From positions 62,001 through 126,000 of the IMG/VR virus record IMGVR_UViG_3300028735_000003: DNA of 64,000 nucleotides. One strand, 5' to 3'. The notes under the pieces were generated by a model. It worked only from the letters and a program-made list of their open reading frames with translations, was not told the DNA's origin and did not search any database. Below, piece after piece: positions 14,206-38,997 of the stretch (position 1 is the first letter of the stretch; every line of letters begins with the position of its first letter). The position numbers and the translations under genes were made by a program.

Positions 14206-14231
14206 GACAACTCTCCTATTGTTTGTAAAGT

Positions 14232-18830: not shown

Positions 18831-18930
18831 CTCCCTTCTTTCGGGGGTATTCCCTCACTGTTGCGCCACAATTGTTTCATGATGGGTTTACATTATAGGT
18901 AGGTTGAATCCAACAATAATGAAACGAAGA

Positions 18931-19482: not shown

Positions 19483-19822
19483 CCCCAAATAGGGGATACA
19501 AGCTTAAAAATTCAATGAAATAATTAATAAATCTTATCAAAATCAGTTTAAGACAAATCTAAAATAAGCTAAAGACCGATTTAACATGGTTCATAACGTG
19601 TCATTTGAAGGTTACAGACTAGTTCAAAACAGGTAATTAGAACATTAAAAGGGACGCTTCCACACTATTTGACACTTTTTGACACTTGAAAACACCAATT
19701 TTAAATTTTAAATTTTCTTATAGTTTCTTATAACATTATATTAATAATTTAATGACACTACATATATGGTCATTTTAAAATCTACTGATAATGGGGCATA
19801 AATATATAATTGGGATTATGAC

Positions 19823-21529: not shown

Positions 21530-21850
21530 TTAAGTTTCGATATAACCAGATATTGTTTTTTTATTGAAACACGAGGATAGTTTTAAGTTTAGCCATTGCA
21601 TTTTTATATGCAGGTGCAAGATGAAGCGTGTTGGATATTTGATTTATTAAGTTATTTTTCTGCATCTGGGAATTGAGGATTGATAATTCTAGTAAAGTTA
21701 TGTTGATAATTTGAATAGAGGCAGTAAACATACAGTTACAGTTATCGGAATTAATGCGGATAATTTTCTTTATGTATATATTTTATACAATTTTTTGTAA
21801 TTGTATTTTACAAACTGGGCAGATCATAACATAGTTAGGTACAGTTTTAA
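21530..21850 (-). pseudogene. decayed copy of 23659..24027
   Basis: MICPVCK start and YQHNFTRIINPQFPDAEK segment with stops and frameshifts. Confidence 0.65.
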
Positions 21851-21854
21851 TTTT

Positions 21855-22262
21855 TGTTGTATATTATTTGGGTTAATATTTGGGATACCATTTATAGTAA
21901 TCATTTTAATATGAGTTGTATATTATTTTGTTGTATATTATATGTGTTTATATTTATGGCACCATTTATAGTAATGGTATTAGTCGAAGCCGTTGATATT
22001 TCTTTCTTATATTTTGCTGACCATATTTTAGTTTTATTTATGTCATAGTAGAAGCGGACGTAATATTGATATTGCAATATAGTATAGTGGACCACATTTG
22101 GAATATTCTACCATCACCGTAGTACATTACACTACATTTATCACATAATATTATTAAATCCAATTGATTATATGTTGATGTTGGGCGTAGATCCGAATTA
22201 TAATATGGGCAGATAATGATTGATGATTTATCTATATTTGAATTACAGTATGGGCAAATCAT
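21855..22262 (-). pseudogene. frameshifted copy of the MICPYCN gene
   Basis: N-half in ORF 22038..22262, C-half (YYVRFYYDINKTKIWSAKY...) in ORF 21901..22095 in another frame. Confidence 0.7.
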
Positions 22263-22968
22263 AATAGCGTTGCAATCAATTTAGTATTAAATTTAATTAA
22301 AGTTATAGCAGCGGACATACAATTAACACAAGTAAATTTGTTTTTGTTTTACATTGGGTTTATATTGGGGATATTATTGATAATAACGGTTTTAGGATAA
22401 GTTATTTGTATTTCTTCTATACATTTTAATGACCATATTTCAGTTTTATTTCTATTATAATAGAAGCAGACGTAGTATTTATATGGCATAATGAGTGTTC
22501 AGGGGATTCGATTAAAATTTAAATATGCTTAGCAACATATTACGGCACATCATACAGTGCCAAGATTTAATGAAAGGTTATTGTAATTATGGTTGAAGTT
22601 ATCGACATTAAGTTATAATATATTTAGGTATTATAATTTTTACTACAAGTATAAGTTTAGACGTGGTTGTAGGCGAACGGCGTTACATTATTGGCAATTG
22701 TTTTTATAGATGCTGGGAATGCGAGTTATATATTGGTTTTATTGAAACACTAGAATAGTTTTAAGTTTGGCTATTGCATTTCATTTATTTTTCTGTTTCA
22801 GGGAATTGAGTACCATAAATCTAGTATTGTAGTTTTTAGTATGAATAGATAATAGAGACAGAAGACATATATTTATCACAATTAATACAGGCAATTTTCT
22901 TTATGTATAGATTTTCTATAATTTTTGTAGTTGTATTTTACAAAGTTGTATTTTACAAAATGGTCAGA

Positions 22969-23280
22969 TTATAACATAGTTAGGTACAGTTTTAATTTTT
23001 GTTGTATATTATGTGGATTTATATTTAGGATACCATTTATAGTAATAGCATTAGTCGAAGCCGTTGATATTTCTTCCCTATATTTTACTGACCATATTTC
23101 AGTTTTATTTATGTCATAATGGAAGCAAACCAAGTGTTTAAATGGTATAATAGTGGTCCAGATTTGAAATATTCTACCGTTATGATTGTAAAACACATTA
23201 CATTTATCGCATAATATCATTAAATACAATTGATGATTTATGTTAGATTCTAAGATTGAATTACAGTATGGGCAAATCAT
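22969..23280 (-). CDS. CPxC zinc-finger family protein (type X)
   Basis: MICPYCN...LCDKC...QQKLKLYLTML. Confidence 0.7.
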   Translation of the reverse strand: MICPYCNSILESNINHQLYLMILCDKCNVFYNHNGRIFQIWTTIIPFKHLVCFHYDINKTEIWSVKYREEISTASTNAITINGILNINPHNIQQKLKLYLTML

Positions 23281-23658
23281 GATAGTATTACAATCAATTT
23301 AATATTAGTGTTTGTATGGTTCGATTAATTTTTAATACGTGGTTTTGATTAGCAAGTGATAATTAAATCAAATTTAAATATTTGCAATTTATAATAAAGT
23401 AAAAAGGGGCGGTTGTTATTTTGGTGAGTGCCGCCCGAAGCTCCCTTTGGTTTATATGATATGTCACAACATGTGACGGCACATCATACAGGCCAAGATT
23501 TAATGAAAGGTTATAGTAATTGGGGTTAAAGTTATGGATTTCAAATTAGAATATATCCAGGTATTATAATTTTTACTACAGTTTTCGGAGTATAAGTTTA
23601 GGCAGTATTGTAGTCGAACGGTGTTTGCAATTTTGTGGGCGAAGCGAGTTATTGGTTT

Positions 23659-24027
23659 TTATTGAAACACGAGGATAGTTTTAAGTTTAGAGATTGCATT
23701 TTTAGGGAAGATATTGATAATATGATTGATATTAAATATGCAGGTCCAAGATGAAGCGTGTTGGACATTTGATTTATTAAGTTGTTTTTCTGCTTCAGGG
23801 AATTGAGGACCCATAATTCTAGTAAAGTTATGTTGATAATCGACTATAAACCAATACGTCAACGAATCATATTGAACAAATATTGTAGTTTTTAGTAGTT
23901 CATTATTTTGAGTAGAGACAGTAAACATACAATTACAGTTATCACAATTAATGCGGATAAATTTTTCTTTATGTATAGATTTTTCTATAATTTTTTGTAG
24001 TTGTATTTTACAAAATGGGCAGATCAT
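23659..24027 (-). CDS. CPxC zinc-finger family protein (type Y)
   Basis: MICPFCK...CDNC...ISKLKTILVFQ. Confidence 0.7.
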   Translation of the reverse strand: MICPFCKIQLQKIIEKSIHKEKFIRINCDNCNCMFTVSTQNNELLKTTIFVQYDSLTYWFIVDYQHNFTRIMGPQFPEAEKQLNKSNVQHASSWTCIFNINHIINIFPKNAISKLKTILVFQ

Positions 24028-24335
24028 AAGATAGTTAGGTACAGTTTTAATTTTTGTTGTATATTATGTGGATTTATATTTAGGATACCATTTATAGTAA
24101 TGGTATTAGTATAAGTTTTGGGGAGTTCTTTTGTACATTTTACTGACCATATATTTGTGTGATTTGTATTATAGTAGAAGCGAACAAAGTGTTTATATTG
24201 TACGATATTAGTCCAAATCTGAAATATTCTACCATCATGGAGGTATATTACATTACATTTATCGCATAGTATCATTAAATATAATTGATTATTTATATTA
24301 TATTTTAAAATTGAATTACAGTATTGGCAAATCAT
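24024..24335 (-). CDS. CPxC zinc-finger family protein (type X)
   Basis: MICQYCN...LCDKC...QQKLKLYLTIL; 4-nt overlap with 23659..24027. Confidence 0.7.
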   Translation of the reverse strand: MICQYCNSILKYNINNQLYLMILCDKCNVIYLHDGRIFQIWTNIVQYKHFVRFYYNTNHTNIWSVKCTKELPKTYTNTITINGILNINPHNIQQKLKLYLTIL

Positions 24336-24653
24336 GATAGCATTACAATCAATTTAAGAGTTCATGGGATTAGATTAAAAATTAAATATATGACATTGAG
24401 TCGCCCGGAGCTCCATTTGGTTTACATGATGCTTAGCAACATATCACGGCACATCATACAGGAGCAATATTTAATGAAAGGTTATGGTAATTGTGGGTGA
24501 AGTTATCGACATCAAGTTATAATATATTTAGGTATTATAATTTTCACTATAAGTATAAGTTTAGACGGTATTGTAGGCGAACGGCGTTACATTATTGGCA
24601 ATTCTTTTTATAGATGCGGGAAAGGCGGGTTATATATTGGTTTTATTGAAACA

Positions 24654-25205
24654 CTAGAATAGTTTTAAGTTTAGCCATTGCATTTTAGGGGAGATATTGA
24701 TAATTTCATTAAGATGAAATAATTCTATTGTTGATATTTCTTCTCTATATTTTAATGACCATATTTCAGTTTTATTTATGTCATAATAGAGGCAAACGAA
24801 GTGTTTATACGGTGTAATGGTGGTCCAGATCTTAAATATTCTACCATCATTATGGTACAACACATTACATTTATCGCATAATATTATGAAAGATACAGTT
24901 TTAATTTTGTTGTATATTATGTGTATTTATATTTAGGACAACATTTTTAGTAATAATTGCTGAAGATTCTTATATACATTTTACTGACCATATTTCAGTT
25001 TTATTTATGTCATAATAGAGGCAAACGAAGTGTTTATACGGCATAATGGTTGTCCAGATGCGAAATATTGTACCATCATTAATGTACTGTACAATACAAT
25101 ACAATACAATACAATACATTACAATACATTACATTTACTGCATAGTATAATTAAATATAATTGATTAGTAATGTTATGTTCTAAATTCGAATTACAGTAG
25201 GGACA
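24654..25205 (-). pseudogene. disrupted and chimeric type X/Y copies with a (TACAA)n microsatellite
   Basis: MICPYCNSNLEH start at 25205 broken by repeats at 25085-25137; second fragment ends in a type-Y-like tail. Confidence 0.6.
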
Positions 25206-25207
25206 AA

Positions 25208-25573
25208 TCATGATAGAAGCACGATCAATTTAATTTTATTAAACAATTTATTATAGTTCATAGGCAATATAGGCTGAGTTTTACAGACATGTTTAAATAA
25301 GACGTGACCTATTTTATATTCGGTAGTAGCATTTGGGTGATCTGGTGGTATATGTATAGCTATTTGTGTATAGTTATTATATGTATCGATTTTATATGGC
25401 ATAACAATCATTTCATGATATTTATATTTACGATCTACTACATAATGGAATTTTTGTTTACCGCCTTGGAACTTAATAGGGGTTGGGCACCAATAGACTC
25501 CACGATTTACATCTTGAGTTTTCATAATTTTACCGCACAACGGGCATAATTCTGTTATTTGTTTTCTTATCAT
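25208..25573 (-). CDS. CPxC family protein with conserved C-terminal tail
   Basis: CPLCG...FNKIKLIVLLS. Confidence 0.7.
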   Translation of the reverse strand: MIRKQITELCPLCGKIMKTQDVNRGVYWCPTPIKFQGGKQKFHYVVDRKYKYHEMIVMPYKIDTYNNYTQIAIHIPPDHPNATTEYKIGHVLFKHVCKTQPILPMNYNKLFNKIKLIVLLS

Positions 25574-25860
25574 TAGGCAACTTTCATTGGTAAGTCATGA
25601 TTAATATCAAAATTATTTTAAAATATAATACTGCAATAACAAGGTAGTTTCTATAAAACAGAAGTCAATTTTATAAAAATAGCGGGTATATTTTTTAATT
25701 TGGTGACATTTTCCGTTGGTGATGAAGTTTTAGGTATAAATTTCATATATTTAATGATCATTTGCAAAATAAATTATCACCAACGCAGTGTTTTTGGCAA
25801 TAGGTATGGACATTTTATTATTAATAAAATCGCATATTGATATAACATACGGGAGATATT

Positions 25861-27669
25861 ATGCCTTTATTTTCAATCATCAATACGCCGGTGGAATTTT
25901 TACAATCGAAATCATGGATTACGAACAAATTTTTTGTTAATTTTGGATACATTGAAGATGGTCCTGGAACAGATTTAAAGTTCTCAAACAGTGCTATGGT
26001 TACTACGCCGATAGAACAGAATCCGTCATTAAAACAATATTTTAAGCCAATTAGCGATCAATACAACCTAAGTTCTTGTGTTGCGAATGCTGTTGCTGAT
26101 TGTTTTGAAGCACAGATGGCTCATAGGAAGGGTTGTGATCCATCTAATATAGAAGATATTTCCAGATTATTTATTTATTGGAACGCCAGGAATCTTTCCA
26201 ATCCACCTACAAGTAACATAGATAAGGGGTCACAGATCAGGTTAGCTTTTGACAGCATGGCACGTTACGGAGCGCCGAGTGAGAAGACATATCCATATGA
26301 TTTATCGAATGTGAACGTAAGACCACCTATTATTGCATATCGCGAAGCTATTAAACATAGGATTAGTAAGTTTTACAGAATAGACGTGGGAGGGATTAAT
26401 AGAATAGTTCAAATCAAGCAAGCATTATCTGCTGGTAATCCAGTTGTATTTGGGACTAAAGTAGCGGAGAGTTTTAAGTATGTAAACAGTGACGAAGTAG
26501 TGGTTAATCCTGGTGGTGGGTGGATAGGTGGACATGCTATGTGTATAGTGGGGTGGTCTGAAGACAAGCAAGCATTTGAAGTTAGAAATTCTTGGGGATG
26601 TTATGATGACAAGACAGAGATTTTGACAAATGATGGTTGGAAATTATTTAAAGATGTAACGTATAATGATAAATTTGCGACATTAAACTCTGATACGCAT
26701 CATTTGGAATTTCAAAAAGCATCAAAAATACATGAGTATGATTTTAGCGGCAAACTTTATTATTTCAAAGATGGACATATAGATCTTGCAGTTACTCCAA
26801 ATCACAGAATGTACGTAGGAGACTATAAAGACAAAGACGACACATCATGGAGTATTAAAAGAGCTGATGAAATTTCAAAGCCTATTTATTTTAAAAAAGA
26901 CGTTATAAACATTGTTCCGGACGTAAGTCACTTTAATATTGAAGACAAAACAGTTGAAGCTGATACGTGGTTAGAATTTATGGGTTATTTTCTATCATGT
27001 GGATACAATTGTGAAAAACATAATAAAACAACTATTTACGAGACAATTGGGTTAAATAAAGATAAGATTAATCATTGTTTGAAAAAACTTCCATTTAAAT
27101 TTTCTAAAGACAAAAAATCTATAAATCACAAAAGTATAAATAGATGGCATTATACAACGAAAGAATTATATAAATATCTTTCTATCTTTGGAAAAGAGGA
27201 TGAAAAATTCATACCACGCTATCTTTTAGAATTATCTCGTCGTCAAAGTAAGATTTTACTAGACGCTATGATGCTTGGTAATGGCACAAAAGTCAAAGGA
27301 AAATATATTTATCATACTTCATCCAAACAATTAGCAGATGATATTCAGGAGTTAGCTTTGCGCTGTAATTTATCGGCAGATATAAGAATTACAAACAGAG
27401 TTAGATCAAAAAATAATAAACACGCAGAATATAAGATAAAAATTAAAACTACAAAAACTATGTCACAATTCAATAATGAACCGATTCAGAAGTCATATAC
27501 TGGTAAAGTTTATTGTGTGACAGTACCAAATGGTCTATTATATGTTAGGAGAAATGGTAAAGCAGTATGGTGTGGAAATTCTGATTGGGGAGTTAATGGA
27601 TATTGTTGGATGGATAAGAACTATATAGCATCTAGCATAACTTCAGACATTTGGGTACCAACTGTTTAA
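25861..27669 (+). CDS. papain-like (C1) cysteine peptidase containing an intein
   Basis: QYNLSSCVANA (catalytic Cys), GGHAMCIVGW (His), VRNSWG (Asn), then intein, then SDWGVNGYCWM. Confidence 0.9.
   Translation: MPLFSIINTPVEFLQSKSWITNKFFVNFGYIEDGPGTDLKFSNSAMVTTPIEQNPSLKQYFKPISDQYNLSSCVANAVADCFEAQMAHRKGCDPSNIEDISRLFIYWNARNLSNPPTSNIDKGSQIRLAFDSMARYGAPSEKTYPYDLSNVNVRPPIIAYREAIKHRISKFYRIDVGGINRIVQIKQALSAGNPVVFGTKVAESFKYVNSDEVVVNPGGGWIGGHAMCIVGWSEDKQAFEVRNSWGCYDDKTEILTNDGWKLFKDVTYNDKFATLNSDTHHLEFQKASKIHEYDFSGKLYYFKDGHIDLAVTPNHRMYVGDYKDKDDTSWSIKRADEISKPIYFKKDVINIVPDVSHFNIEDKTVEADTWLEFMGYFLSCGYNCEKHNKTTIYETIGLNKDKINHCLKKLPFKFSKDKKSINHKSINRWHYTTKELYKYLSIFGKEDEKFIPRYLLELSRRQSKILLDAMMLGNGTKVKGKYIYHTSSKQLADDIQELALRCNLSADIRITNRVRSKNNKHAEYKIKIKTTKTMSQFNNEPIQKSYTGKVYCVTVPNGLLYVRRNGKAVWCGNSDWGVNGYCWMDKNYIASSITSDIWVPTV
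26599..27579 (+). mobile_element. intein (327 aa) with degenerate LAGLIDADG domain
   Basis: Begins CYDDKTEILT, block B VTPNH, ends VYCVTVPNGLLYVRRNGKAVWCGN, +1 Ser. Confidence 0.9.
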
Positions 27670-27679
27670 GGAGAGGTAC

Positions 27680-28030
27680 ATGAAAATCTTTCATGTTTTA
27701 TTATTAGTAGTAACTCTAATTGGTTGTGCAAACTGTAGTCAAGGCGGGAATGAGCCTTATGTTAGGACTCAGCCAGGGGTTGAATATTGCGATGATATGT
27801 GCAATGTATTAAAGGATAAAGATTGCAAAGGTTATTATGAAGATATTATAATAAACTGCAATGATGATCCTATTTACTTTAAAACAATGAATTGTGATAT
27901 AAACGGGGTGGTCATACTAACTTGCACTCAATTTTGTGAATATGAGATGCGCAATTCTGTTCAATTAAATCCTAAATGTATAGCCGACAATTTAGTTACT
28001 TGTGATGAAATAGAAGATATTTGTAAATAA
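27680..28030 (+). CDS. Cys-rich lipoprotein
   Basis: Lipobox LIGC, many Cys; AGGAG RBS; co-oriented with the protease. Confidence 0.7.
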   Translation: MKIFHVLLLVVTLIGCANCSQGGNEPYVRTQPGVEYCDDMCNVLKDKDCKGYYEDIIINCNDDPIYFKTMNCDINGVVILTCTQFCEYEMRNSVQLNPKCIADNLVTCDEIEDICK

Positions 28031-28031
28031 T

Positions 28032-28420
28032 CAAGAAAACACTACAAGCATTTAATTTTGTCCAATTTTTATCTTGAAAAGATAAATTAACTAAACCATC
28101 TGTTGACATAATTATAACAAATTGTAGAGTTTGATTTTATCAAATACCGATTGTTGTTTGTCGTTGGAGAAAAGCATCAAATGTTTACGTTGTGATAATT
28201 TTTGCAATTTATATATAATAGTTTTATTTTGTTATAATTTATATAAATTTTGTGTAGCAAAGATATAATAGTTTCTATTTAATTTACGATATACGTAGAA
28301 TAGTTTATTTGAATGTAGAATCTAATTCTTGTACATATTCTTTACGATCTTGACAAAGTCAAAGATTTTTATTAACAGGTAGCATTTCTCTATTGTAGAT
28401 TAGGCGCTTAAAGTTCATTT
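28032..28420 (-). pseudogene. decayed member(s) of the C-terminal-tail family
   Basis: Frameshifted tail KLDKIK/MLVVFS at about 28032-28075; scattered stops. Confidence 0.4.
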
Positions 28421-28578
28421 ATTTGAGTTTTTCTTATAATAGACTTATTTAAAGTTACCTTTATACACATATCTAAAGTCAGACATCATTGTTAGCATTA
28501 CTTATTTTCATTATCAATTTGAAAATCGTTCAAATTTATAGGAAGACATCTTTAGGCAAGAACTAAATATCGTAACAA

Positions 28579-28998
28579 TCACAAAAACGTTGCCAATGTT
28601 TTAATTTTGTTCAATGTATTTATAAGATAGGGATAATCAAGCGCAATCAATCTATTATTTAATACTACTTTTTCTGGTATTAAATAATCTTTTTCATATT
28701 TATTTTTAGTAAAATATACGATAGTTGTATTACGCATCACATAGTTTACATATATTTCATATCCTAAAACTGGAAGATCTACTTTTTCAAATAATTTCTC
28801 ATTAGATAATGATGATATTTGTGAGAATAAATGAGTTGGAGGATTTTCAAATTTAATTTGGTTAGTATCATAATGATTACATACAGACTCTATAAATGAA
28901 AATGAATGTTTATTAAGTATTTGGCATTTATCATTAAAAAAATACTTATATCTCATATCTTTGCCACAGACAGGGCATTTATCATAAGATTTAAACAT
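28579..28998 (-). CDS. CPxC family protein with conserved C-terminal tail
   Basis: CPVCG...LNKIKTLATFL. Confidence 0.75.
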   Translation of the reverse strand: MFKSYDKCPVCGKDMRYKYFFNDKCQILNKHSFSFIESVCNHYDTNQIKFENPPTHLFSQISSLSNEKLFEKVDLPVLGYEIYVNYVMRNTTIVYFTKNKYEKDYLIPEKVVLNNRLIALDYPYLINTLNKIKTLATFL

Positions 28999-29080
28999 TA
29001 AATAAACTCAATTTATAAATGATTTTGTACTTTTATTTTGATAAAATGATACACAATGTGTGATAATAAATGATATTTAA

Positions 29081-29464
29081 TCATAAAAACGTAGCATATA
29101 TCTTAATTTTCCTGATTAATTTATCAAAATTTGATATATCTGGATCAAACCAAGGCACAGTATTATAAAATAATTTACTATATGGAATTCCAGTAGTAAT
29201 TACACCAGCATTTTTTCCTTTTATGATAATAGGCTTATTAAGATATATGGTTTTAGTATTAAAATCCCAACGTATTTCTTTAGTGCTAGAGTCATTATAT
29301 GACATAATGAGCACTTTATCTATATTAGAATCATATTGAATAGTAAATCTGTGACTAGGGTATTTATTACAAATTTTTACGTCGTACAAACTTTTATTGT
29401 TAAAAAGACCGAAATCATTTAAAAGTATATCTCCGCATTTAGGGCATTTTGATGGTATTATCAT
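29081..29464 (-). CDS. CPxC family protein with conserved C-terminal tail
   Basis: CPKCG...IRKIKIYATFL. Confidence 0.75.
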   Translation of the reverse strand: MIIPSKCPKCGDILLNDFGLFNNKSLYDVKICNKYPSHRFTIQYDSNIDKVLIMSYNDSSTKEIRWDFNTKTIYLNKPIIIKGKNAGVITTGIPYSKLFYNTVPWFDPDISNFDKLIRKIKIYATFL

Positions 29465-29526
29465 AATATTTATTAGTAACTTGATATAATATATATTGAT
29501 TTTATAGCTACTTTAATTACATTTAA

Positions 29527-29892
29527 TCATAAGAATGTTATAAACAAAGACACTTTAGATTTTAGATTTTTTAAATCTGGGAAATCGGGATCTATTATTT
29601 TAGATACGTCTATTTTTGACATCTGTTTGTTATTTTTGTAACAAACAATTTGACTTTTCGTATTATAATAATCTAAAAATATAAATATATCATATTTACT
29701 GGTGAGAGACATTTTCAACAAATCAACTTGTTTAGTTTTTTCATCTACGAAAATTTGAAGGCAGTGATTTAAGCCCGCACAAGTTCTTTCTATATAATCT
29801 GATGTCTTATCAACAAATGTTATTAATCTGTTTTTTAATTTATTTGATCGCATTAAATCGCCACAAATAGGGCAATACTTAGTGTCTTGCAT
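29527..29892 (-). CDS. CPxC family protein with conserved C-terminal tail
   Basis: CPICG...KSKVSLFITFL. Confidence 0.75.
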   Translation of the reverse strand: MQDTKYCPICGDLMRSNKLKNRLITFVDKTSDYIERTCAGLNHCLQIFVDEKTKQVDLLKMSLTSKYDIFIFLDYYNTKSQIVCYKNNKQMSKIDVSKIIDPDFPDLKNLKSKVSLFITFL

Positions 29893-29920
29893 ACATAGCT
29901 ATATAACTCGAAGTTTACTC

Positions 29921-29990
29921 GTCAATTACCACAAGCACAAGGCTAGTAGCTTACCCATGGATAAACCTAGATATTCGGCTGATTGACACG
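29921..29990 (-). mobile_element. IS200/IS605 right-end (omegaRNA-like) remnant
   Basis: Minus strand GTCAATCAGCCG...degenerate hairpin...TAATTGAC, matching the 3' end of the 48.3-48.7 kb element. Confidence 0.55.
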
Positions 29991-30103
29991 CAATAAAGGA
30001 AAAGTTAAAAAAACTTTTATGTAAAGCTTGCATCATATCTGAATATCAGATAAATCTATATTTTATTGGCATAAAGTTGTATAGATAAATAAAGGAACTT
30101 TTT

Positions 30104-30454
30104 ATGAGCCACGACTCAACTAATTTATTAGATTTAGTAACTGCATTTGAAAAACGTGCTGAGTTAGCCTTGTTTAAAATTTCTGAAAACAAGAGAGATC
30201 CTAAAGCAAAGGTTAGAAATCGTGGAATAGTTTGTGTTCCTGCTGAAAGAGCAAAAGATAACAAAGATCATTTCCCAATTAATAATATTGATCAAGCAAG
30301 GAACGCCATTGCTAGAGTTAATCAATATAGCAAGGTACCAGATTGGTACAAAGGATCACTTCAGTCATTGGTTAATCTTGTAATACGCAAGGTACATTCG
30401 AAGTATCCATCAATTGAGATTTCTAAAGATGCCAAAAAACCTGGCAAAAATTAA
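30104..30454 (+). CDS. conserved phage hypothetical protein
   Basis: HFPINNIDQARNAIARVNQ motif; AAGGA upstream. Confidence 0.7.
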   Translation: MSHDSTNLLDLVTAFEKRAELALFKISENKRDPKAKVRNRGIVCVPAERAKDNKDHFPINNIDQARNAIARVNQYSKVPDWYKGSLQSLVNLVIRKVHSKYPSIEISKDAKKPGKN

Positions 30455-30460
30455 TTGTTG

Positions 30461-30544
30461 TGCTAAGGAGAGGGCTTGATCACTACACCATTACAGGTAT
30501 TAGTTTCTTAGGCTAGCGCGGCTGCCAGTTTCGCCACGATATCA
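30461..30544 (-). pseudogene. tRNA-Leu remnant (apparent anticodon AAG)
   Basis: Leu-type D arm GCGAAACTGGCAGCCGC, loop CTAAGAA, long variable region; degenerate T arm and unpaired acceptor. Confidence 0.55.
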
Positions 30545-30560
30545 TATTAAATTGTCATAG

Positions 30561-30644
30561 TGCTTAAGAGTGGATTCGAACCACTACGTCCTTTCGAGCA
30601 TAAGTTTTTAAGACTTCCCTGGCTACCAATTACAGCATTACTCC
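30561..30644 (-). pseudogene. tRNA-Leu(TAA) with non-pairing 5' acceptor strand
   Basis: D arm CTG...CAG, loop CTTAAAA, variable arm, T arm AGTGG-TTCGAAT-CCACT; 5' GGAGTAA does not pair with 3' CTTAAGC. Confidence 0.75.
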
Positions 30645-30893
30645 TGGTTAAATCTAGAGTCTGATATACTGGCGCGTGTGCAACCATTACGTCTACATAA
30701 TTTGTATTTATCTCTTTAACCATCCTATCAACTTTAGCCTCCATTTCTGGAAGCTCTCTTTCATAATTCCACATTATATTTATTATCCAAATCCAAAGAA
30801 TCTGCAAGTGGATGGTATAGTAGTGCGTCTGCTGTAGATCCATCAGAAAGATTCACAGTAATTGGTGAACGCCCATATCCACGTGGCTCAATA

Positions 30894-31145
30894 TCATTCA
30901 ACCACATGCGTATCATTTGATTGAGCAATTCCAAATTCATAAACTTTAACCACGGACGGGCTATCTGTCTGTTGAAAATATGACAATATCTTACTAAATC
31001 TCTTAAAGAAAGTTGGATCTGGTTCGTGAGTTACTTTTAAGATTTTATTTGGTTTATCTTCTAGTTCACATAACCATCCGCTTCTGCCTCTTATTGGCTT
31101 ACCAAGTTTAAACAAACTCCACATAGCGGTTCGTGCCGTGCTCAT
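30894..31145 (-). pseudogene. truncated kinase-like fragment
   Basis: GRSGW...KILKVT...SPSVVKVYEFG then stop. Confidence 0.45.
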
Positions 31146-31513
31146 ACCAACAATGTATGTCGTAAAAACTGTCGCGCAAGGACGGACATTTTTTAAAAAT
31201 CATGGATCTTGGTCTTCGATAATCATTCGCACACCTTGATAGATTCCTCGATTACAAAAAGTAAACTCTCCTTGCAATTTATGACAATCAATAAGTCGTT
31301 TCCCCTTCATCACATCCTCGAAATCAGACAGAAACATAGAATATTTGCGCCAGTGTTTAGTGACCTAAACAAAAATGAGCAGACCACTTTGTAGGATAAC
31401 ATCTAACAAACTAAAATGTATCAAAAAAAAAACATACAAATCATTCACTAGTACAAGACTGATGATTTTCTTGGTATAAAATCATTTTCCAAACCATTTA
31501 TTGTGAAGTTTTC

Positions 31514-32071
31514 CTATGAGAAAATAACATAAGTACTTAGCTTATTAATTAACCTTTCTCTGGTTTTAAATTTATAAAGAGGCAAAAGTGGAAGATCTAA
31601 CTTGATTATGTTATCAGCTTTACTGTTCCATACATTTACTTCTGTTTTATTTTCATCATACTCTGTCATAAGACTATAAATTCTATCACTATCATATACA
31701 GATAATATTTCGCGTTTAATAGTTAAGGCTTTTACATATCCATTTGAATTAAATTCCATGTTATTTGTTAGTATGTAGTTTCTACATTCGCTACAATTGC
31801 TGGTAAACACAAGATTTTTAGTCTCAAGATACGTTGAAAATTTTTTTTGATCTGACACTATGAATTTATTAGTTTCTATATAAATCCTTAATGCCAAAGT
31901 AAAAGAATACGTTATCTTTAAAGTAGCATCTAACACTCCATGATTTATAACTTGCTGAATATTTCTTATTTCATTATTTTCTAAGCAACAAATCTTAGCG
32001 GTTGTCTTTTCACCGCAGGAAAAACACGGTCCATTATATAGCATAAAGTCTTTGACTGTAAATCTTTTCAT
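31514..32071 (-). CDS. CxxC family protein with conserved C-terminal tail
   Basis: CFSCG, CSEC...INKLSTYVIFS. Confidence 0.75.
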   Translation of the reverse strand: MKRFTVKDFMLYNGPCFSCGEKTTAKICCLENNEIRNIQQVINHGVLDATLKITYSFTLALRIYIETNKFIVSDQKKFSTYLETKNLVFTSNCSECRNYILTNNMEFNSNGYVKALTIKREILSVYDSDRIYSLMTEYDENKTEVNVWNSKADNIIKLDLPLLPLYKFKTRERLINKLSTYVIFS

Positions 32072-32133
32072 TAACTTATAATTATCATTATATTATCGCG
32101 AGATGTTTTCTATAGCTAAAGCAAATTTAGATC

Positions 32134-33225
32134 TTATGATTTCGCGAAATATCTTAAATACGCCAAAATAAACTCTTGTATATCACCATCTAAAACACGA
32201 TTACAGTTGTTATGTTCAAAATCAGTTCTATGATCTTTTACTAATGAATAAGGTGAAAGAGTATAAGTTCTAATCTGGCTACCAAATTTGGCATCCATTT
32301 GAGACTCGATGAACTTATCTTTTTCAGATTGTCTTTTCTTCTTTTCGATATCATATAATTTTGATTTTAACATCTTCAGCGCAGTTTTCTTATTAGAAAG
32401 TTGATCGCGCTCGGTTCTAACCAATATATTAATGCCTGTAGGTAAATGTTTTAATCTAATTGCGCTAGCAACCTTGTTTACATTTTGACCGCCAGAGCCG
32501 GAAGATGTTTGTGCGGTGATTTCAATATCTTTATCTTCTATTTTAATATCGATAGTATCTTCGATATCTGGTGTAACAGATACTGCTGCAAAGGAAGTAT
32601 GACGGGCATCTCCTGCATTAAAAGGAGAATTACGGATTAAACGATGAACTCCATTTTCTCCTTTAAGGAAGCCATAAGCATATGGACCATCTATTCTATA
32701 AGATACGGAATCTGTACAAATAGAACTATGTTCTTCTGACGGTTTATTATCTAATATTTCCACTTTAAAATTATAAGCATCTGCCCAACGCAAGTACATT
32801 CTGGACATCATTGTAACCCAATTAGCGGCTTCTAGACCGCCAGCGCCCGCATTAATTGTCAGTATAGCCGGGCTATTAGCCATTGGATCTGTCATCATTT
32901 GACGAAACTCTAAGGCTAACAATTCATCATAAATCTTTGCAATATGCTCTTGTTGTTCCGGCAATTCTTCTGGGAGTTCTTTTGCAATTTCTGAATAGAA
33001 ATCGATGTCATCAGACATTTACTGTATTTTTGTGACGAAATCAGTTAGGCGCTGGCGTTCTTTCATAAGGGCGCCAGCTTTCTTTGCATCACTCCAAATA
33101 TTATTATTTGATATCTGTAAATCAATTTCGTCGATTCTAGCTCTATATTTACTAAAATCGGTCATACTATTTATAGACTTTATCTTCTCAACACAGTATG
33201 CAATTAATTGTTGTGCTGTTTCCAT
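32134..33225 (-). CDS. prfB: peptide chain release factor 2, interrupted by an in-frame TAA at codon 69 (33019-33021)
   Basis: SPF anticodon mimic (LIRNSPF), GGQ (SGSGGQNVNK); N-terminal 68 aa (IWSDAKKAGALMKER) in the same frame; junction CAG TAA ATG. Confidence 0.9.
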
Positions 33226-33406
33226 TGGTTTATAACTTTGGTTATAGGTTATAATTAAAACTTATTAATATAGGTGCAGATCTATAGCATTATAAAGACA
33301 TTTCCAAAACCAATGATGGAAGATATTATTATGATTATTGTTACCAAACACATAAATACTATCTAATGACATTGGCACTTATATAATAAGCTTTACAGTT
33401 TAAAAA

Positions 33407-34093
33407 TTAAGACATCAAGACCCAGTTATCTAGACGTGAAAACAATTTATCTCTATATTGAATATCAAAATTTGGTCTTATATTCAGTTTAGGTAATACT
33501 TTCTCAAAAATTTTAGGTCTAAATTTTTTATCTTTTGCTTCTTTATCAGTACGTGTGTAGTAAAGTAATACGGTCTCTTCATTTTCGTAGTCTATATTAA
33601 CCATATAAATCTTTTCTACGTCATTAACTTTTCTTGATAAAGAAAACGCCTCATTAGTGTTTACTATTTTTGAATTCGTTCTACTTAAATGGTTTGTAAT
33701 TATTACATTTTTATCATCCATGTATAGATCAAATATGGGAGAACATCTATAATAACAGCCGCGATATAGATCTATATACCAATTTTTACCAATAAACCCC
33801 TTATCGTTGCAAAGATAGAATAAATATATTTGTTTCTGTAAGGCTTTTTGTTTTAAAGATTGAGAGCTGAATCTTATATCTATTTTGCTATCACCGAATT
33901 CGATATCGATATATGACCCTGCGAAATCAGGGTCTTCTGATTTAAACGGTTCAAAACTATAAACTTTATTTTTTGCGTTAAAAATAGTAATACCTTTAAA
34001 ACACATAGAATCTATCATTTGTAGATATAGAGTCAAATGTTCGCCACAAATCGGACATTTTGAATTAAAATCCAAGAAATTATTAAAATTCAT
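33407..34093 (-). CDS. CPxC family protein with conserved C-terminal tail
   Basis: CPICG...FSRLDNWVLMS. Confidence 0.75.
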   Translation of the reverse strand: MNFNNFLDFNSKCPICGEHLTLYLQMIDSMCFKGITIFNAKNKVYSFEPFKSEDPDFAGSYIDIEFGDSKIDIRFSSQSLKQKALQKQIYLFYLCNDKGFIGKNWYIDLYRGCYYRCSPIFDLYMDDKNVIITNHLSRTNSKIVNTNEAFSLSRKVNDVEKIYMVNIDYENEETVLLYYTRTDKEAKDKKFRPKIFEKVLPKLNIRPNFDIQYRDKLFSRLDNWVLMS

Positions 34094-34154
34094 TTATTTT
34101 ATTATTGCAACTGGCATGGTCTATAATATGTAGATTTTTACTAATTTACCACTA

Positions 34155-34218
34155 GTCAATTATCATCAGCACAAGATTGGTGGCTTATCCTTGGATATCA
34201 ATGATATTTGATTGACTG
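34155..34218 (-). mobile_element. IS200/IS605 right-end remnant
   Basis: Minus strand GTCAATCAAATATC...AAGCCACCAATCTTGTGCTGATGATAATTGAC. Confidence 0.5.
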
Positions 34219-34321
34219 TTTGTTCTACATTATTCTTCTTAGTAGTTTATCATAAAAATAAAGAACTGATGAGAAACTTTCTGTAACTTGTTCTTTCTTT
34301 TCTAAATTTATATAATTATTA

Positions 34322-34960
34322 TTAGCTGAAAATAACTAGAGTAGATACTCTTGTTTTTAACTTATCTTTATCAAAATCTGAGAAATTTATAAATGGTATT
34401 ACCAATGGTTCACTTTCATAATTATTGATTGGGACTATTCTTGTTACATTATAAATCCAATCACTTTGTACCAAATATCTATCAATAGTAACTGATTCAA
34501 AATACGCACGGAATGGATATATTCTGGTATTGATGCTAAAATTTTTATATTCTCCAGATTGTTTTAGTGACTTTTCGCACGTTAAGAAATCTGAATTTAT
34601 AGAATAAAATGTTTTACAGTTTTTATTAGTACATCTAGATGAAATATGTGGTTTGAACTGCTCAAATATTCTTAATGTTTCGTTATATTCGGCATTATTG
34701 GTTTTATTTGGATGAAATGATATTTCATTAGTTTGTATATCTATAGAGCCCACAGAATCAACAGAAGTAGATATGGATGTGTACTTTATATTAAAGACCA
34801 AATGATTATCTGTCAGCTTAGAATTTATTAAAGATGAAATGCCTGAATAATCTAATATAACATAATTTGTAAGTCTAGATTTTAGCGGCTCTCCACAAAA
34901 AATGCATTGTGTCCTGAATGATATAAAATCAGATATATTTTCGAACTTTTTCTGAATCAC
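34322..34960 (-). CDS. CxxC family protein with conserved C-terminal tail
   Basis: CIFCG...KTRVSTLVIFS. Confidence 0.75.
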   Translation of the reverse strand: MIQKKFENISDFISFRTQCIFCGEPLKSRLTNYVILDYSGISSLINSKLTDNHLVFNIKYTSISTSVDSVGSIDIQTNEISFHPNKTNNAEYNETLRIFEQFKPHISSRCTNKNCKTFYSINSDFLTCEKSLKQSGEYKNFSINTRIYPFRAYFESVTIDRYLVQSDWIYNVTRIVPINNYESEPLVIPFINFSDFDKDKLKTRVSTLVIFS

Positions 34961-35601
34961 GAAAATACCAAAAGTTTCTTAATTCTATTTAACATATCAT
35001 ATGGATCTGAAACGTCATTAGATATCAATGGTAAACTTATCGTTTTAAATCCAGTATTTTTTTTAGTATTGTTTATTGGTGTATACTCTGTTTTGTCTAT
35101 TGTATATACATTACGTATTTCATATACATTATTTTTATCATGTTCCAACGTAATTAATTCAGAATTCAAAATTGCTTCATCTATGCGTCTTTCATTTATA
35201 TTAATCTTTAGCATTAGCGTATAAGAATACCTGTAACAATACATACAATCAATTGAGTGATCACACAACATTATCCCATTATACAAAGTATATTGTGGTT
35301 GAGTAACTCCAGGAATGAAAGCAAAAGGTATTTGCTTAAATCCGTATACAAAAGTATTGTTCATAGGTCGAGTAATAGAAAACTCTATAATAGTATTAGA
35401 GTCTATATTAAATACTAATCTGTCGCCATTATACAGATCTACTTTAATATTTCTTATTTTGCTATCAGAAAGAGGTAAAGAATGTGAATGATCATTTTGT
35501 ATATTCCAACAAAACAGAGATTCTGACATAGAATGTCCACATATCGGACAAACTTCACGATATGGATATGCATCACTTAATTTAGTAAAGATTTTCAGCA
35601 C
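34957..35601 (-). CDS. CPxC family protein with conserved C-terminal tail
   Basis: CPICG...LNRIKKLLVFS. Confidence 0.75.
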   Translation of the reverse strand: MLKIFTKLSDAYPYREVCPICGHSMSESLFCWNIQNDHSHSLPLSDSKIRNIKVDLYNGDRLVFNIDSNTIIEFSITRPMNNTFVYGFKQIPFAFIPGVTQPQYTLYNGIMLCDHSIDCMYCYRYSYTLMLKININERRIDEAILNSELITLEHDKNNVYEIRNVYTIDKTEYTPINNTKKNTGFKTISLPLISNDVSDPYDMLNRIKKLLVFS

Positions 35602-35604
35602 AAA

Positions 35605-36258
35605 TTATGACTCGTAATATTCTTCAAATACTTCTTTTGTTAATCCGGAATCAATCAAAATTGGTCTGCCATCTTTAGTTCCCCATGAAGAAATCCTAGC
35701 CATATCTCCTGGCATAAGATTAAATTTTTTACCAATTTCAACTAACTCTTTGTATATATCGCTATTAGATATAGCGTCAAAATTATCTGGTTTCTTTCGA
35801 TATTTATGTTTTGAAACCGATTTTAGCCCAAATTTAACCGACTCACCAAAATCATTGAAATCTAATCCAGTCATTTTCTTGAATTGTTTTTCAGTTATCT
35901 TCTCAAGATATGCGACCTCAATCCAAGCATAATTCTGTGCCTTACGAATTACATTATTTAAATACTTGGATTTCATTTTAGAATTTGCTTCTACTTTATT
36001 TTGCGCAATTCCTTTATCATTCTTAGCTAATTTAAGTACTGTTTTGTTCGGAGTCAAGTACACGATTCTGCTCGATCCAGACGATAAATGTTTTAGATTT
36101 TTCTCGGCATACTTCTTTCGTGCGCTATATGTATCTAATTTTTGAAGATTTTTCAAAATTACATCGGTATTTTCTGAGTTTTCAGGCAATTCTTCCTTCT
36201 CTGCGGTCGCCAATGACTCATATATGCTAGCAAATCTAAGTATTTTATTAGCGTTCAT
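35605..36258 (-). CDS. atypical protein-kinase-like protein
   Basis: SSGSSRIVY loop, VLKLAK, AQNKVE, DMARISSWG, ILIDSG. Confidence 0.65.
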   Translation of the reverse strand: MNANKILRFASIYESLATAEKEELPENSENTDVILKNLQKLDTYSARKKYAEKNLKHLSSGSSRIVYLTPNKTVLKLAKNDKGIAQNKVEANSKMKSKYLNNVIRKAQNYAWIEVAYLEKITEKQFKKMTGLDFNDFGESVKFGLKSVSKHKYRKKPDNFDAISNSDIYKELVEIGKKFNLMPGDMARISSWGTKDGRPILIDSGLTKEVFEEYYES

Positions 36259-36498
36259 GTAATAAATACTTTGTTAGTAATATTTCAGAAGATATATCAT
36301 ATTCTATGATAACAAAAGAAGATTATCTAAAATTGATACAGGAAGTGTTTGCATCAGAAAATGAAGATGATCTAGGTATAGATTCCGAAACATCCACAAA
36401 TGTCGAGCTAATTAACAAAAATAAAATAGATGCAGGATTAACATGATGCTATTTTAAAAGTTATAAGAACAAATAAAAAGATAATTATAGGCGAGTTT

Positions 36499-36798
36499 AT
36501 GGTTATAACGAAATCTATTTCCAGTCATATAAATGAAAATGTATATCAAGACTCTTCTACTAATGATATTAATAACTCAACAATATATACAATTATAGTA
36601 TATGAACATAAAACCAAAACATTAACAGGTATACCTTGTAATATTCAGGTAAAAGTAGATTTATCAAAAGATATAAGATTCGCTAATAAAGATTGGATAA
36701 AATGTTTCAATCGTTTTGCAGGAAAATTAAGTGAAAAAGAGTTCGTAGAGTTATTAAAATGGATGCAAGCAATTACAAAATTATCAGCATTCATCTAA
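36499..36798 (+). CDS. hypothetical protein
   Basis: 99 aa, ends QAITKLSAFI. Confidence 0.6.
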   Translation: MVITKSISSHINENVYQDSSTNDINNSTIYTIIVYEHKTKTLTGIPCNIQVKVDLSKDIRFANKDWIKCFNRFAGKLSEKEFVELLKWMQAITKLSAFI

Positions 36799-37457
36799 TA
36801 GAACGTCAATAATTTGTTTATTCTTGCTATGGTCTCAGATTTAGAGACAAATTTTATTAGACTTGTTTCTATAGTATTAAAGTTAGGAATGTATACAGAA
36901 GTTTTTATGTCATCCTTATATCTTTCTGTTCCGAAATTCAATATACTCTTATTAGTAATATAATTATTTACTAACTTAAATAGTCTATATCCATCATATC
37001 CATCAGTAATATGTGTTGATAAATCAAATGATTCTGAACTTATTGTTAAATCTGGTAATTTTAATGGTTCTGTCAGATTTATTTTGAAATAATTAGATGA
37101 GTACTGATATGATTTGCAATGATTACAGAATTTGTATATTTTATACATGCCGGTGTTTGCATTAAAAGATACAAATCTTTTAAGAAGAGACACCGGAATA
37201 TATTCTATTTTTTTGCTGTTTTTTCTATAAAACTCTATAAAAAATGAATTATCATCTAATCCAAATGAATAGCCTACATAATATGATTTTTGATTTTTAT
37301 CTATGGAAGGAATAAATAGACTAATCAATAATCTTCCATCTTCATATCTATGTTTTTGCTGTTTTCGTGAATTAAACGTCATTGACAGAGTGTTATCACA
37401 CAATGGGCACATATTCCTATAAACTAAAAAATCTCTCAAATTCATTACTATTTCCAA
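36795..37457 (-). CDS. CPxC family protein with conserved C-terminal tail
   Basis: CPLCD, CNHC...IARINKLLTFY. Confidence 0.75.
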   Translation of the reverse strand: MEIVMNLRDFLVYRNMCPLCDNTLSMTFNSRKQQKHRYEDGRLLISLFIPSIDKNQKSYYVGYSFGLDDNSFFIEFYRKNSKKIEYIPVSLLKRFVSFNANTGMYKIYKFCNHCKSYQYSSNYFKINLTEPLKLPDLTISSESFDLSTHITDGYDGYRLFKLVNNYITNKSILNFGTERYKDDIKTSVYIPNFNTIETSLIKFVSKSETIARINKLLTFY

Positions 37458-37656: not shown

Positions 37657-38997
37657 CTATTTATTCAATAAAGATTCTGGTGGTGGACCAGGTTGTGTCA
37701 TATATCCACTAGCCACTTCTTGCATATAATTAATTAATGACATATACTCTTTATATAAATCGCCAATTAGCTGACCATTATTGTTCATAGTATATAAATC
37801 TCCGTATTCTGGCTGAAAGTATGGGAGCCACAGCATTAGGACTTCGCTTTTGGATATATTCTTTTTTGATTTGAACATATATGTGTCTGCGGCAATAGCA
37901 TTATACATTCTATTTAATTTGTCTCTAAAGTTAATAAGTTTTGCTGCAGCAATACGGTCTGTATTAATATTTTGTTTGTTTTGTTGTATCAACGCTTCTT
38001 CAGGATTCGATTTAGTAGCATATTGTTGGTATAAATTCCAAGCAGTTCTAGTTCTTGGTCCGAGAATGCCATCCACATCACTTTCACTCCATTCTCTTCC
38101 ATTTAATTTATCAGATAATGTTTTTTTGAAATTAGGGTCTCTTTCAGTATAATTTAAAATATTTTGTTGAAATGACATAATTTTAGGCTTTGTTTTTAGA
38201 TTGGCATCAGCACTGTATGGATCTGAGCTTGTTTTTTTTGATTCTGCTAATACTCTACGCATGGCACTTGTTTCTAGCCAAGTATTTGGTGGGTTTTGTG
38301 TCATGTTAAACTGATTACGCACCTGTTGCACTAAATATCTTCCTTTATCTGCCAACTGACTTAATCTAGTGTTTTCTCTTGGATTAGAGATTACTAGTTT
38401 TGCAGACATATCGTCTAATCTAGTTATAACTCTTTCCATCTTAGGGACGAATGATTGTGCAGTTTTTGAATCGGATGATTTTTGTGCTTCTTGTAATTTT
38501 GCGTAATAGAAATTGAATAACGCATCTATTGATTGGGCTGGTTTGGGAGCTGGCGCTGGTGCCCCGGCTGCTTGTTCAGTAGTTTGCTGTGTTGATTTTG
38601 GTAATGTGGAGTTCGACATCAATTTTAAAAGATTATATTTTTTCATTAATGAATTTTTATACGATGGTACAATTCTTGATAAATTATCAATTGCTTCTTT
38701 TAACTTTTCTATATCAATATTAGGGTCCTTCAAAATTGATGAAGCTCTCATAGCTTCTTGTGAGTTTTTTTGATCTTGTGGTACTAGTGATAATATAGAT
38801 TGTGCGTATTGAACTAACTCTTTGAATTTATAAAGAAAGTCTAAAGCAGTTACTGGTCCTGTGTTACCGTATTCATCTACCATAAACACACTCTGAGTAC
38901 TCTGAGCAGATTTTAAAAAGTCTTTTCTTTCATCATACAATGATAATCTCTCAAACAATGCGGCTTTTTTAAGAATCATATCAATTTTTTTCATCAT
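37657..38997 (-). CDS. helical protein with putative peptidoglycan-binding motif
   Basis: VDGILGPRTRTAW resembles the PG_binding_1 DGIxGPxT motif; Ala/Pro linker. Confidence 0.6.
   Translation of the reverse strand: MMKKIDMILKKAALFERLSLYDERKDFLKSAQSTQSVFMVDEYGNTGPVTALDFLYKFKELVQYAQSILSLVPQDQKNSQEAMRASSILKDPNIDIEKLKEAIDNLSRIVPSYKNSLMKKYNLLKLMSNSTLPKSTQQTTEQAAGAPAPAPKPAQSIDALFNFYYAKLQEAQKSSDSKTAQSFVPKMERVITRLDDMSAKLVISNPRENTRLSQLADKGRYLVQQVRNQFNMTQNPPNTWLETSAMRRVLAESKKTSSDPYSADANLKTKPKIMSFQQNILNYTERDPNFKKTLSDKLNGREWSESDVDGILGPRTRTAWNLYQQYATKSNPEEALIQQNKQNINTDRIAAAKLINFRDKLNRMYNAIAADTYMFKSKKNISKSEVLMLWLPYFQPEYGDLYTMNNNGQLIGDLYKEYMSLINYMQEVASGYMTQPGPPPESLLNK

Follow-up and report, generated by a model that had tools for sequence, protein, structure and literature searches.

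The closest described precedent for the genes considered here is an expansion of about 35 zinc-ribbon copies in Bacillus phage G, a phage of about 0.5 Mb, whose products were suggested to bind DNA or to act as specific transcription factors (Iyer et al. 2021, PMC7824862). In this work we analysed a 64,000-nucleotide stretch of DNA, hereafter the window, comprising bases 62,001-126,000 of the IMG/VR virus record IMGVR_UViG_3300028735_000003, in which twelve minus-strand genes encode divergent proteins with an N-terminal CxxC and a common hydrophobic tail at the very C-terminus. As in phage G, these are lineage-specific, multi-copy small proteins that begin with a putative CxxC zinc ribbon. The twelve can also be compared with poxvirus ankyrin host-range proteins, a multi-copy viral family that likewise combines variable target-binding parts with a conserved C-terminal element and evolves in birth-and-death arrays; there the terminal element is PRANC, a multi-helix domain of about 40-50 residues that binds eukaryotic Skp1. 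A hydrophobic free C-terminus is shared, in addition, with bacterial C-terminal tags, namely ssrA/ClpX, the ligands of the Prc/Tsp and DegS PDZ domains and the beta-signal of outer-membrane proteins (OMPs). The ssrA tag ends in LAA, while DegS ligands and the OMP beta-signal end in Phe at the last position. In the window proteins, structural models indicate that the tail is most likely the last helix of a common zinc-binding fold rather than a detachable docking tag.

A preliminary description, made from the letters of the window, had proposed that twelve proteins share the N-terminal CxxC and a tail motif ending exactly at the stop codon. We recovered all twelve as minus-strand open reading frames (ORFs) of 103-228 amino acids (aa) between 22,969 and 37,457, with CxxC inside the first 22 residues and the tail motif directly before the stop in 12 of 12. 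Across the whole record, ORFs of at least 90 aa were searched with the pattern [KR][ILV]xx-h-h-x-[FMLI]-[SLQY]-stop, with CxxC required in the first 25 residues. The tail pattern occurred in 13 of 408 such ORFs, 12 of which also carried the early CxxC, and all 12 ORFs with both motifs were confined to one block of the record. The joint count expected by chance is 0.018, and shuffled proteomes average 0.15 tail matches. Twelve is the number of intact genes, and the copy number is higher, because decayed copies lie at about 21.9-22.5 kb and 24.6-25.2 kb. An alternative genetic code was considered and gave no selective gain in ORF coverage or coding density. Since the family genes use TAA, TGA and TAG and no alternative code improves coding density, the standard code applies and the motif truly abuts the stop.

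Two further observations bear on the family. Read by eye, the 15 nucleotides (nt) upstream of all 12 starts are A/T-rich and lack a Shine-Dalgarno-like purine run, which would be consistent with a host that does not rely on Shine-Dalgarno pairing, for example a member of the Bacteroidota. Outside the window, 1.1-1.5 kb before its start, a 143-aa ORF on the minus strand at 60488-60919 of the record (G000:C1; L014:4488-4919) ends in ...FKSLAKRLIKLIVFS, which is the family tail. This ORF has no zinc knuckle and no match to the family hidden Markov model (HMM), and its last 16 residues alone resemble a member (L015:17055-17525, E 0.003). The resemblance is due to chance, or else the ORF is a member that is truncated or has diverged very far.

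The twelve genes comprise long forms and short forms, the long forms having about 100 extra residues between two cysteine knuckles. They are given below together with orthologues in three further phage contigs, L015 (478.7 kb), L018 and L019 (a 394-kb IMG/VR record), with database representatives (P0001, P0002) and with a relative about 97% identical to the phage in a hot-spring metagenome (run X2).

36795-37457, minus strand: long form of 220 aa with a TTG start, CPLC at residues 17-20, second knuckle CNHC and tail RINKLLTFY; the database representative P0002 begins four codons later at MNLRDF (216 aa); syntenic orthologues L018:640-1296 (29% identity) and L015:7483-8166.
34957-35601, minus strand: long form of 214 aa with C18/C21, C119/C122 and E148 and a predicted tail helix at 200-213 (RIKKLLVFS), modelled as the long form; P0001 is 96% identical; orthologue L018:2500-3102.
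34322-34960, minus strand: long form of 212 aa, its GTG start overlapping the upstream stop (GTGA), tail RVSTLVIFS; orthologue L018:3105-3695 (32% identity).
33407-34093, minus strand: long form of 228 aa, 'NWVLMS' subtype, tail RLDNWVLMS; orthologues L015:10001-10720 (41% identity) and L018:3692-4384; the relative in run X2 has an in-frame 18-nt insertion at 33775.
31514-32071, minus strand: long form of 185 aa, 'MKxFTVKDF...LPLLPLYKFK' subtype, tail KLSTYVIFS, directly downstream of the release-factor gene; orthologues L018:6092-6670 (36% identity) and L015:12548-13117.
29527-29892, minus strand: short form of 121 aa, tail KVSLFITFL, modelled as the short form with seven predicted strands and a helix at 108-120; orthologues L015:14656-15018 (43% identity) and L019:14274-14663 (35% identity).
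29081-29464, minus strand: short form of 127 aa, tail KIKIYATFL.
28579-28998, minus strand: short form of 139 aa, tail KIKTLATFL; orthologue L015:15144-15569 (40% identity).
25208-25573, minus strand: short form of 121 aa, tail KIKLIVLLS, the second putative zinc site being a single Cys and a possible His.
24024-24335, minus strand: short form of 103 aa, MICQYCNS type, its stop overlapping the start of the next gene (ATGA); recent duplicate of 22969-23280 (73% identity).
23659-24027, minus strand: short form of 122 aa, MICPFCK type, tail KLKTILVFQ.
22969-23280, minus strand: short form of 103 aa, MICPYCNS type, tail KLKLYLTML.

The twelve proteins belong to a family that extends well beyond the window. 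In a search of 1.84 billion proteins, a profile of the 12 retrieved 682 cluster representatives at E<=1e-3, 49 of them at E<=1e-10, and the window proteins themselves score 59-118 bits against the family profile, which was built from the same 12. Database members are nearly all 156-239 aa long and matched from residue 1-6 to the last residue, over profile positions 2-144. Their N-terminus reads MKxFxxLxDAxxYxxxCPxC and their C-terminus ...LPLIPLDxxNPxxTLxRIKxLxxFS, with the subtype variants ...LPLLPLYKFKxKExLxxKIKTYLxFS and ...RLDSWILMS. C18, C21, C119 and E148, the Glu being a feature of the long forms, are invariant in a 142-sequence alignment, in which C122 is at least 90% conserved, and within a single subtype the full length is conserved, with the blocks C..C..Y.Y, LNSE, HEIRNxY, TEY and LPLIPLD. 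Among the 12 window proteins, a second knuckle of the form C-x2-5-C is seen in nine; the remaining three show one Cys and a His close by. Because this second knuckle is conserved, the N-terminal CxxC would be half of a four-ligand zinc ribbon, zinc binding being suggested by the ligand pattern.

The statement that the middles of the proteins do not align by eye was a fair one: leave-one-out HMMs of the trimmed cores performed mostly no better than shuffles. Profile and structure methods show that the cores are homologous. Comparison of the long and short profiles by hhalign aligned 93 columns, running from the second Cys knuckle to the C-terminus, with a probability of 96.8% and an E-value of 2.5e-10. 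The modular adaptor family put forward in the preliminary description therefore survives in part. The proteins do form a single family that has a terminal helix in common and middles that vary strongly, but its cores are not independent, since they share the second knuckle and beta module as well as the invariant C18, C21, C119 and E148.

Searches of existing resources yielded no described counterpart. Scans of members against Pfam, PHROGs, NCBIfam and PADLOC gave only sub-threshold zinc-ribbon noise, and no Pfam family was found among 56 family members scanned. The Lar restriction-alleviation family (PF14354/TIGR03655) was examined as a candidate and rejected; one member reached 14.8 and 19.1 bits against cut-offs of 28.6 and 39.6, over the zinc-ribbon part only. 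There was no match in a tblastn search of two members against 50,697 phage records, the sole match in a word-index protein search was a 96%-identical copy, a related-locus search with a single member gave no matches, and a literature search found no description of the family. So far, the family is seen solely in huge-phage or unassigned metagenomic contigs.

We modelled one member of each form with AlphaFold2. The long form (34957-35601, 214 aa, using the 142-sequence alignment) gave a mostly beta model with a mean predicted local distance difference test score (pLDDT) of 85.2 and a predicted template modelling score (pTM) of 0.79, in which the tail is a helix spanning residues 200-213 at pLDDT 91-95. 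The short form (29527-29892, 121 aa, using 60 short forms from four phages) reached pLDDT 88.8 and pTM 0.78 and was predicted as seven antiparallel strands followed by a helix at 108-120, with a helix pLDDT of 78-86. In both models a putative zinc ribbon is combined with a beta meander and with an amphipathic helix at the C-terminus that coincides with the tail. The preliminary description had named a core helix of one common fold as the finding that would speak against a docking tail, and as far as the models show, this is what the tail is.

Comparison of the models with known structures returned no close relative. A Foldseek search of both models against the PDB gave nothing at E<=0.001. Exhaustive VIA-align searches, in which Z-scores below 8 fall short of the level that means more than a common arrangement, stayed below that level throughout. 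For the long form the top row was Elf1 at Z 4.6 (residues 146-212), and PUR-alpha repeats appeared at Z 3.7-3.8; for the short form the rows were LolB (Z 6.7), LolA (Z 5.9), Ugi (Z 5.9) and Ugi-2 (Z 4.9), and also OspA, BLIP-like and FABP- or nitrobindin-like sheets. The long-form rows that take in the helix are Elf1 over 146-212, KTSC over 148-214 and a BLIP-like row over 5-211, and since these compact beta-alpha rows include the helix, they offer indirect evidence that the model packs it on the sheet. Matches in BFVD were confined to entries named 'Uncharacterized protein [uncultured Caudovirales phage]', apparently family relatives of both long and short form. ESM Atlas feature and structure look-ups provided no lead (scores <0.85, TM <0.5), and sequence profiles of the PDB matched generic zinc ribbons only (TFE, Elf1, L37Ae, RPB9), over 35-45 residues and at non-significant E-values of 0.02-0.5. 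A homodimer prediction for the short form scored 0.02, which we count neither for nor against binding. Covariation among 212 aligned members (mutual information with average product correction, MI-APC) included some helix-strand pairs; these were inseparable from the subfamily signal and were not used.

Tail logos were built from 148 long members from the database and 60 short members from the arrays. The tail has helical periodicity, with hydrophobic residues at -12/-11, -8, -5, -4 and -2. Position -9 is occupied by R/K in 98-100% of sequences, position -7 by K in 40-63% and position -2 by Phe in 88%, and the chain terminates in Ser (83% of the long and 55% of the short forms) or in Leu. The Pro and Asp/Asn that had been noticed ahead of the tail are real and form a cap at -15 to -19, with Pro at -15 and Asn/Asp at -16 and -19. 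In all 208 logo sequences position -2 is hydrophobic and the chain ends at -1. Among the 148 database members, an internal tail occurs solely in P0095 (454 aa), in which two family domains are fused head to tail and the first tail, ...QRVRIYSFIF, runs straight into the second domain's MLKKFLNFNHNCPVC. Gene overlap was ruled out as the cause of the exact termination: the stop overlaps a downstream start in only 3 of the 12 genes.

The family genes are organised in arrays that surround the gene for release factor 2 (RF2), and this layout is common to the window and the contigs L015, L018 and L019. In each of these three contigs, several family genes for proteins of about 200 aa are often translationally coupled with a conserved ORF (about 217 aa) and the gene for a release factor of 362 aa; the short members come next, in series of 9 to about 25 or more, all with the N-terminal CxxC and the tail. 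The arrays of the related huge phages comprise more than 20 copies. The arrays are co-oriented, and their stop and start codons often overlap. The long members of the window and several of its short members have syntenic orthologues at 24-43% identity in the three other contigs. Paralogues inside one genome, by contrast, are almost undetectable to each other by BLAST, except for the recent duplicate pair (73% identity). The combination of syntenic orthologues and barely similar paralogues indicates that most paralogues are old and have been individually retained. In the MICPYCNS subgroup, duplication and decay are ongoing: a repeat unit of about 1,055 bp encodes a pair of family genes (103 aa and 122 aa), and most units have decayed to fragments. 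In the same repeat region, a 68-nt non-coding stretch is 99% identical between 21444-21511 and 23586-23653.

Taking these results as a whole, the proteins are anciently diverged paralogues of one family, and we give roughly even odds to the combined statement that they are built on a scaffold of zinc ribbon and structural helix and act as small, stable, target-specialised binders. The N-terminal CPxC knuckle and the second C-x2-5-C knuckle would form the zinc ribbon, with the additional residues of the long forms probably adding beta structure between them. A curved antiparallel beta meander would follow, and then the terminal amphipathic alpha-helix of 13-14 residues that makes up the tail. 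The hydrophobic positions of the tail most likely pack on the beta sheet as part of the core, which would explain the constancy of the tail in proteins whose sheet surface, loops and insert between the knuckles have diverged. Each paralogue may be adapted to a target of its own, of host or phage origin, during takeover or counter-defence, and the genes would be expressed in operons together with the phage RF2. A binder function is suggested by the small co-oriented gene array, the retention of distinct orthologues, the birth-and-death dynamics and the general resemblance to small phage inhibitors made of a sheet plus a helix.

Several observations sit less easily with a structural helix and target-specific binders. 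In 147 of 148 database members and 60 of 60 array members the chain stops exactly one residue past the -2 anchor, the P0095 fusion being the sole exception, and such an absence of length variation is not obviously demanded of a purely structural helix. The polar tail positions, R/K at -9 and K at -7, are more conserved than the rest of the fold. In addition, helix burial is deduced from pLDDT and alignment ranges rather than measured, and the fold searches yielded no functional analogue, the best Z-scores being 4.6 and 6.7.

The first two of these points are also what speaks for a different role of the tail. With its invariably free ...F-S/L end, the C-terminal helix would serve all members alike as a signal for docking or targeting, or as a degron, and would deliver varied zinc-ribbon heads to a single hub. 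That hub could belong to the host, as a protease, a clamp or RNA polymerase, or be a compartment or particle of the phage. No other segment of the family is nearly as conserved as the tail, its one internal occurrence is in a fusion protein, its helix carries conserved polar residues, and there are many paralogues per genome. We nevertheless regard this possibility as doubtful. Monomer models predict the helix with confidence, structural alignments place it inside compact domains, homology extends to the rest of the protein, and the analysis identified no partner. The precedents that had been invoked for a docking tail (ssrA/Clp, PDZ, the BamA signal and F-box/PRANC) do not fit by sequence: there is no LAA-COOH as in ssrA, no terminal Phe or signal peptide as in the OMP beta-signal, no match to PDZ class I/II ligands, and no match to PRANC, F-box or ankyrin of Pfam in the 12 window proteins or the 56 family members scanned. 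A more specific form of the proposal would make the always terminal ...[KR]-h-K-x-h-h-x-F-S helix a phage signal of a new kind, used for targeting or docking, that brings dozens of different zinc-ribbon heads per genome by way of their free C-terminus to one receptor (a host hub protein, a phage-built compartment or the capsid); we can entertain it only tentatively.

It is unlikely, in our view, that the proteins are sequence-specific nucleic-acid-binding regulators or structural DNA- or RNA-binding proteins whose ribbon and sheet contact nucleic acid with a contribution from the basic face of the helix. The weak zinc-ribbon similarity to TFE, Elf1, L37Ae and RPB9 (E 0.02-0.08) and the PUR-alpha repeats among the structural rows point in this direction, as do the presumed co-transcription with a translation factor and the phage G precedent (PMC7824862), but the similarities are all below significance and limited to the generic zinc ribbon, and a known DNA-binding motif is absent. 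The isoelectric point (pI) is 8.2-9.6 in 11 of the 12 window proteins, whereas the family-wide median is about 6.7-7.3 and one tenth of members fall below 5.2; the basic pI of the window proteins may reflect the 28% guanine-plus-cytosine (GC) content of the window. Finally, a membrane-targeting amphipathic helix (MinD/FtsA-like), or a half-barrel and helix acting as a LolA/LolB-like lipid-binding module, is highly improbable: an amphipathic helix with Lys/Arg and aromatics does lie at the extreme C-terminus, and LolB, LolA-superfamily and FABP- or nitrobindin-like barrels are the top short-form rows, but all of these have Z <8 and cover residues 1-99 with the helix outside, the hydrophobic face is wide, the helix is predicted with high confidence in a soluble monomer, and there is no signal peptide or lipobox.

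Besides the intact family genes, the array region contains decayed copies, the repeats in which these lie and two conserved neighbours.

24602-25211, minus strand: decayed MICPYCNS-type copies, including an N-terminal fragment (25119-25211, 30 aa) that begins with an ATG overlapping the stop of 25208-25573.
21864-22543, minus strand: decayed copies, including a 74-aa ORF at 22038-22262 (MICPYCNS..., no tail) and fragments matching the family HMM.
20968-25238: tandem repeat region with a unit of about 1,055 bp and copies 60-99% identical, the source of the MICPYCNS/MICPFCK gene pairs.
32134-33225, minus strand: RF2 gene, not a family member, with PCRF and RF-1 domains and the SPF and GGQ motifs; conserved syntenic neighbour.
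35605-36258, minus strand: 217-aa ORF ending ...PILIDSGLTKEVFEEYYES, not a family member; conserved syntenic neighbour.

The RF2 gene is split in frame by TAA-ATG at 33016-33021 into ORFs of 68 aa and 294 aa. In the relative from run X2 the same six bases are TCA CTG (Ser-Leu) and RF2 is unbroken, and the release factor is contiguous, at 362 aa, in the three related phages; that of L019 is 63% identical to the one in the window. Two substitutions created a stop and a start together, which may mean a functional two-piece RF2 or UAA-dependent autoregulation. In all four phages compared, the 217-aa ORF is the immediate upstream neighbour of the gene that occupies the 'LPLIPLD'-type position. By eye, its GSSRIVY...VLKLAK stretch is kinase-like, with no Pfam match, and its N-terminus (KILRFAxxxxSLA) resembles that of the 446-aa ORF at 37657-38997. 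Two ORFs on the opposite strand interrupt the family array: a cysteine-peptidase-like ORF at 25861-27669 (plus strand; weak Peptidase_C39_2 match) that contains a LAGLIDADG intein, and after it, at 27680-28030 (plus strand), a Cys-rich 116-aa ORF with a lipoprotein-like signal (LIGC). Counting near variants, the motif CTTGTGCTGGTGGTAATTGAC has 3 sites in the window, where 0.14 would be expected, and 15 in the record, on both strands, with none in a reversed control. Its window sites at 29921-29941, 34155-34175 and 56010-56030 (all minus strand) lie upstream of genes, two of which are family members, and CTTGTGCTGGTGGTAATTGAC is a candidate phage promoter or regulatory site by sequence; folding of the sites gave no convincing structure.

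The source genome is that of an uncultivated huge phage. The IMG/VR record is linear and 353,765 bp long, with a CheckV completeness of 79%, and encodes a gpA-type large terminase, a class I ribonucleotide reductase and a TubZ-like tubulin, with inteins in each. Within the window there are, in addition to the bacterial-type RF2, a GMP reductase, collagen-repeat proteins and a glycosyltransferase. A giant eukaryotic virus and a nucleus-forming phage were both considered and were rejected or found no support: the gpA-type terminase and TubZ are present, and a multisubunit RNA polymerase was undetectable with Pfam. No close cultured relative was found, blastn of the region against phage records giving no match. 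Public runs place the phage in a microbial mat, and none of the public RNA runs was found to contain the locus.

Elsewhere in the window, a truncated TnpB/OrfB_IS605 ORF (PF01385 and a Cas12f1-like TNB domain) at 1789-2439 (plus strand) lies at the edge of an 18-kb stretch (2000-20000) with a GC content of 0.34-0.47, compared with about 0.30 elsewhere, a strong negative GC skew and few long ORFs. A transfer RNA at 14683-14745 (minus strand) was called by Rfam and not reported by ARAGORN. Two collagen triple-helix repeat proteins are encoded at 57303-58547 (plus strand) and 62477-63580 (minus strand), and these, together with an adjacent Kelch-like ORF of 634 aa, are candidates for fibre or decoration proteins.

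In huge phages the genes without an assigned role number in the hundreds, and one of their large families is identified here. It counts at least 682 clusters at 50% identity, with each genome holding from 12 to more than 25 copies, and it has neither an entry in Pfam, PHROGs or NCBIfam nor a clear structural relative. The defined architecture, the confident models and the orthologous positions beside RF2 make a block of 'dark', early-type genes experimentally approachable. If the tail is structural only, the family would be a natural library of small zinc-stabilised binder scaffolds. Were the tail a common recognition signal, it would represent a new principle of protein routing in phage infection, and with docking its members would parallel, in a bacterial virus, the PRANC/F-box adaptor families known from eukaryotic viruses.

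Against the known systems, the family is set apart as follows. Its terminal element is a single helix of 13-14 residues in a bacterial virus rather than a PRANC-type multi-helix domain, and its variable part is one homologous fold of zinc ribbon and beta structure. The bacterial C-terminal tags differ in that the family has Phe at -2, Ser or Leu at the last position and a long amphipathic helix inside a folded domain; unlike proteins with the OMP beta-signal, family members begin with a putative zinc knuckle and not with a signal peptide. The classical zinc ribbons (TFE/TFIIE, Elf1, L37Ae/eL43 and RPB9) share the two CxxC-type knuckles and provide the only sequence-level similarity found, but have no counterpart to the beta meander, the long inter-knuckle insert or the tail helix. 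With Ugi/SAUGI and BLIP-like proteins the family shares a small antiparallel sheet plus helix and, potentially, binding or mimic surfaces, Ugi being aligned over 63 of 70 residues (Z 5.9); these proteins have no zinc site and no sequence similarity to the family, and the analogy is a functional one only. In the case of phage G, the family HMM matches the ribbon only (best E 0.0017, 17 bits, profile positions 13-57), and one phage G ORF that we inspected lacks the K[IL]KxxLxF[SL] tail; the two expansions are analogous rather than homologous. What is new here is an undescribed and widespread family of huge phages with an apparently unmatched fold, for which a multi-copy zinc-ribbon family in a jumbo phage provides the precedent.

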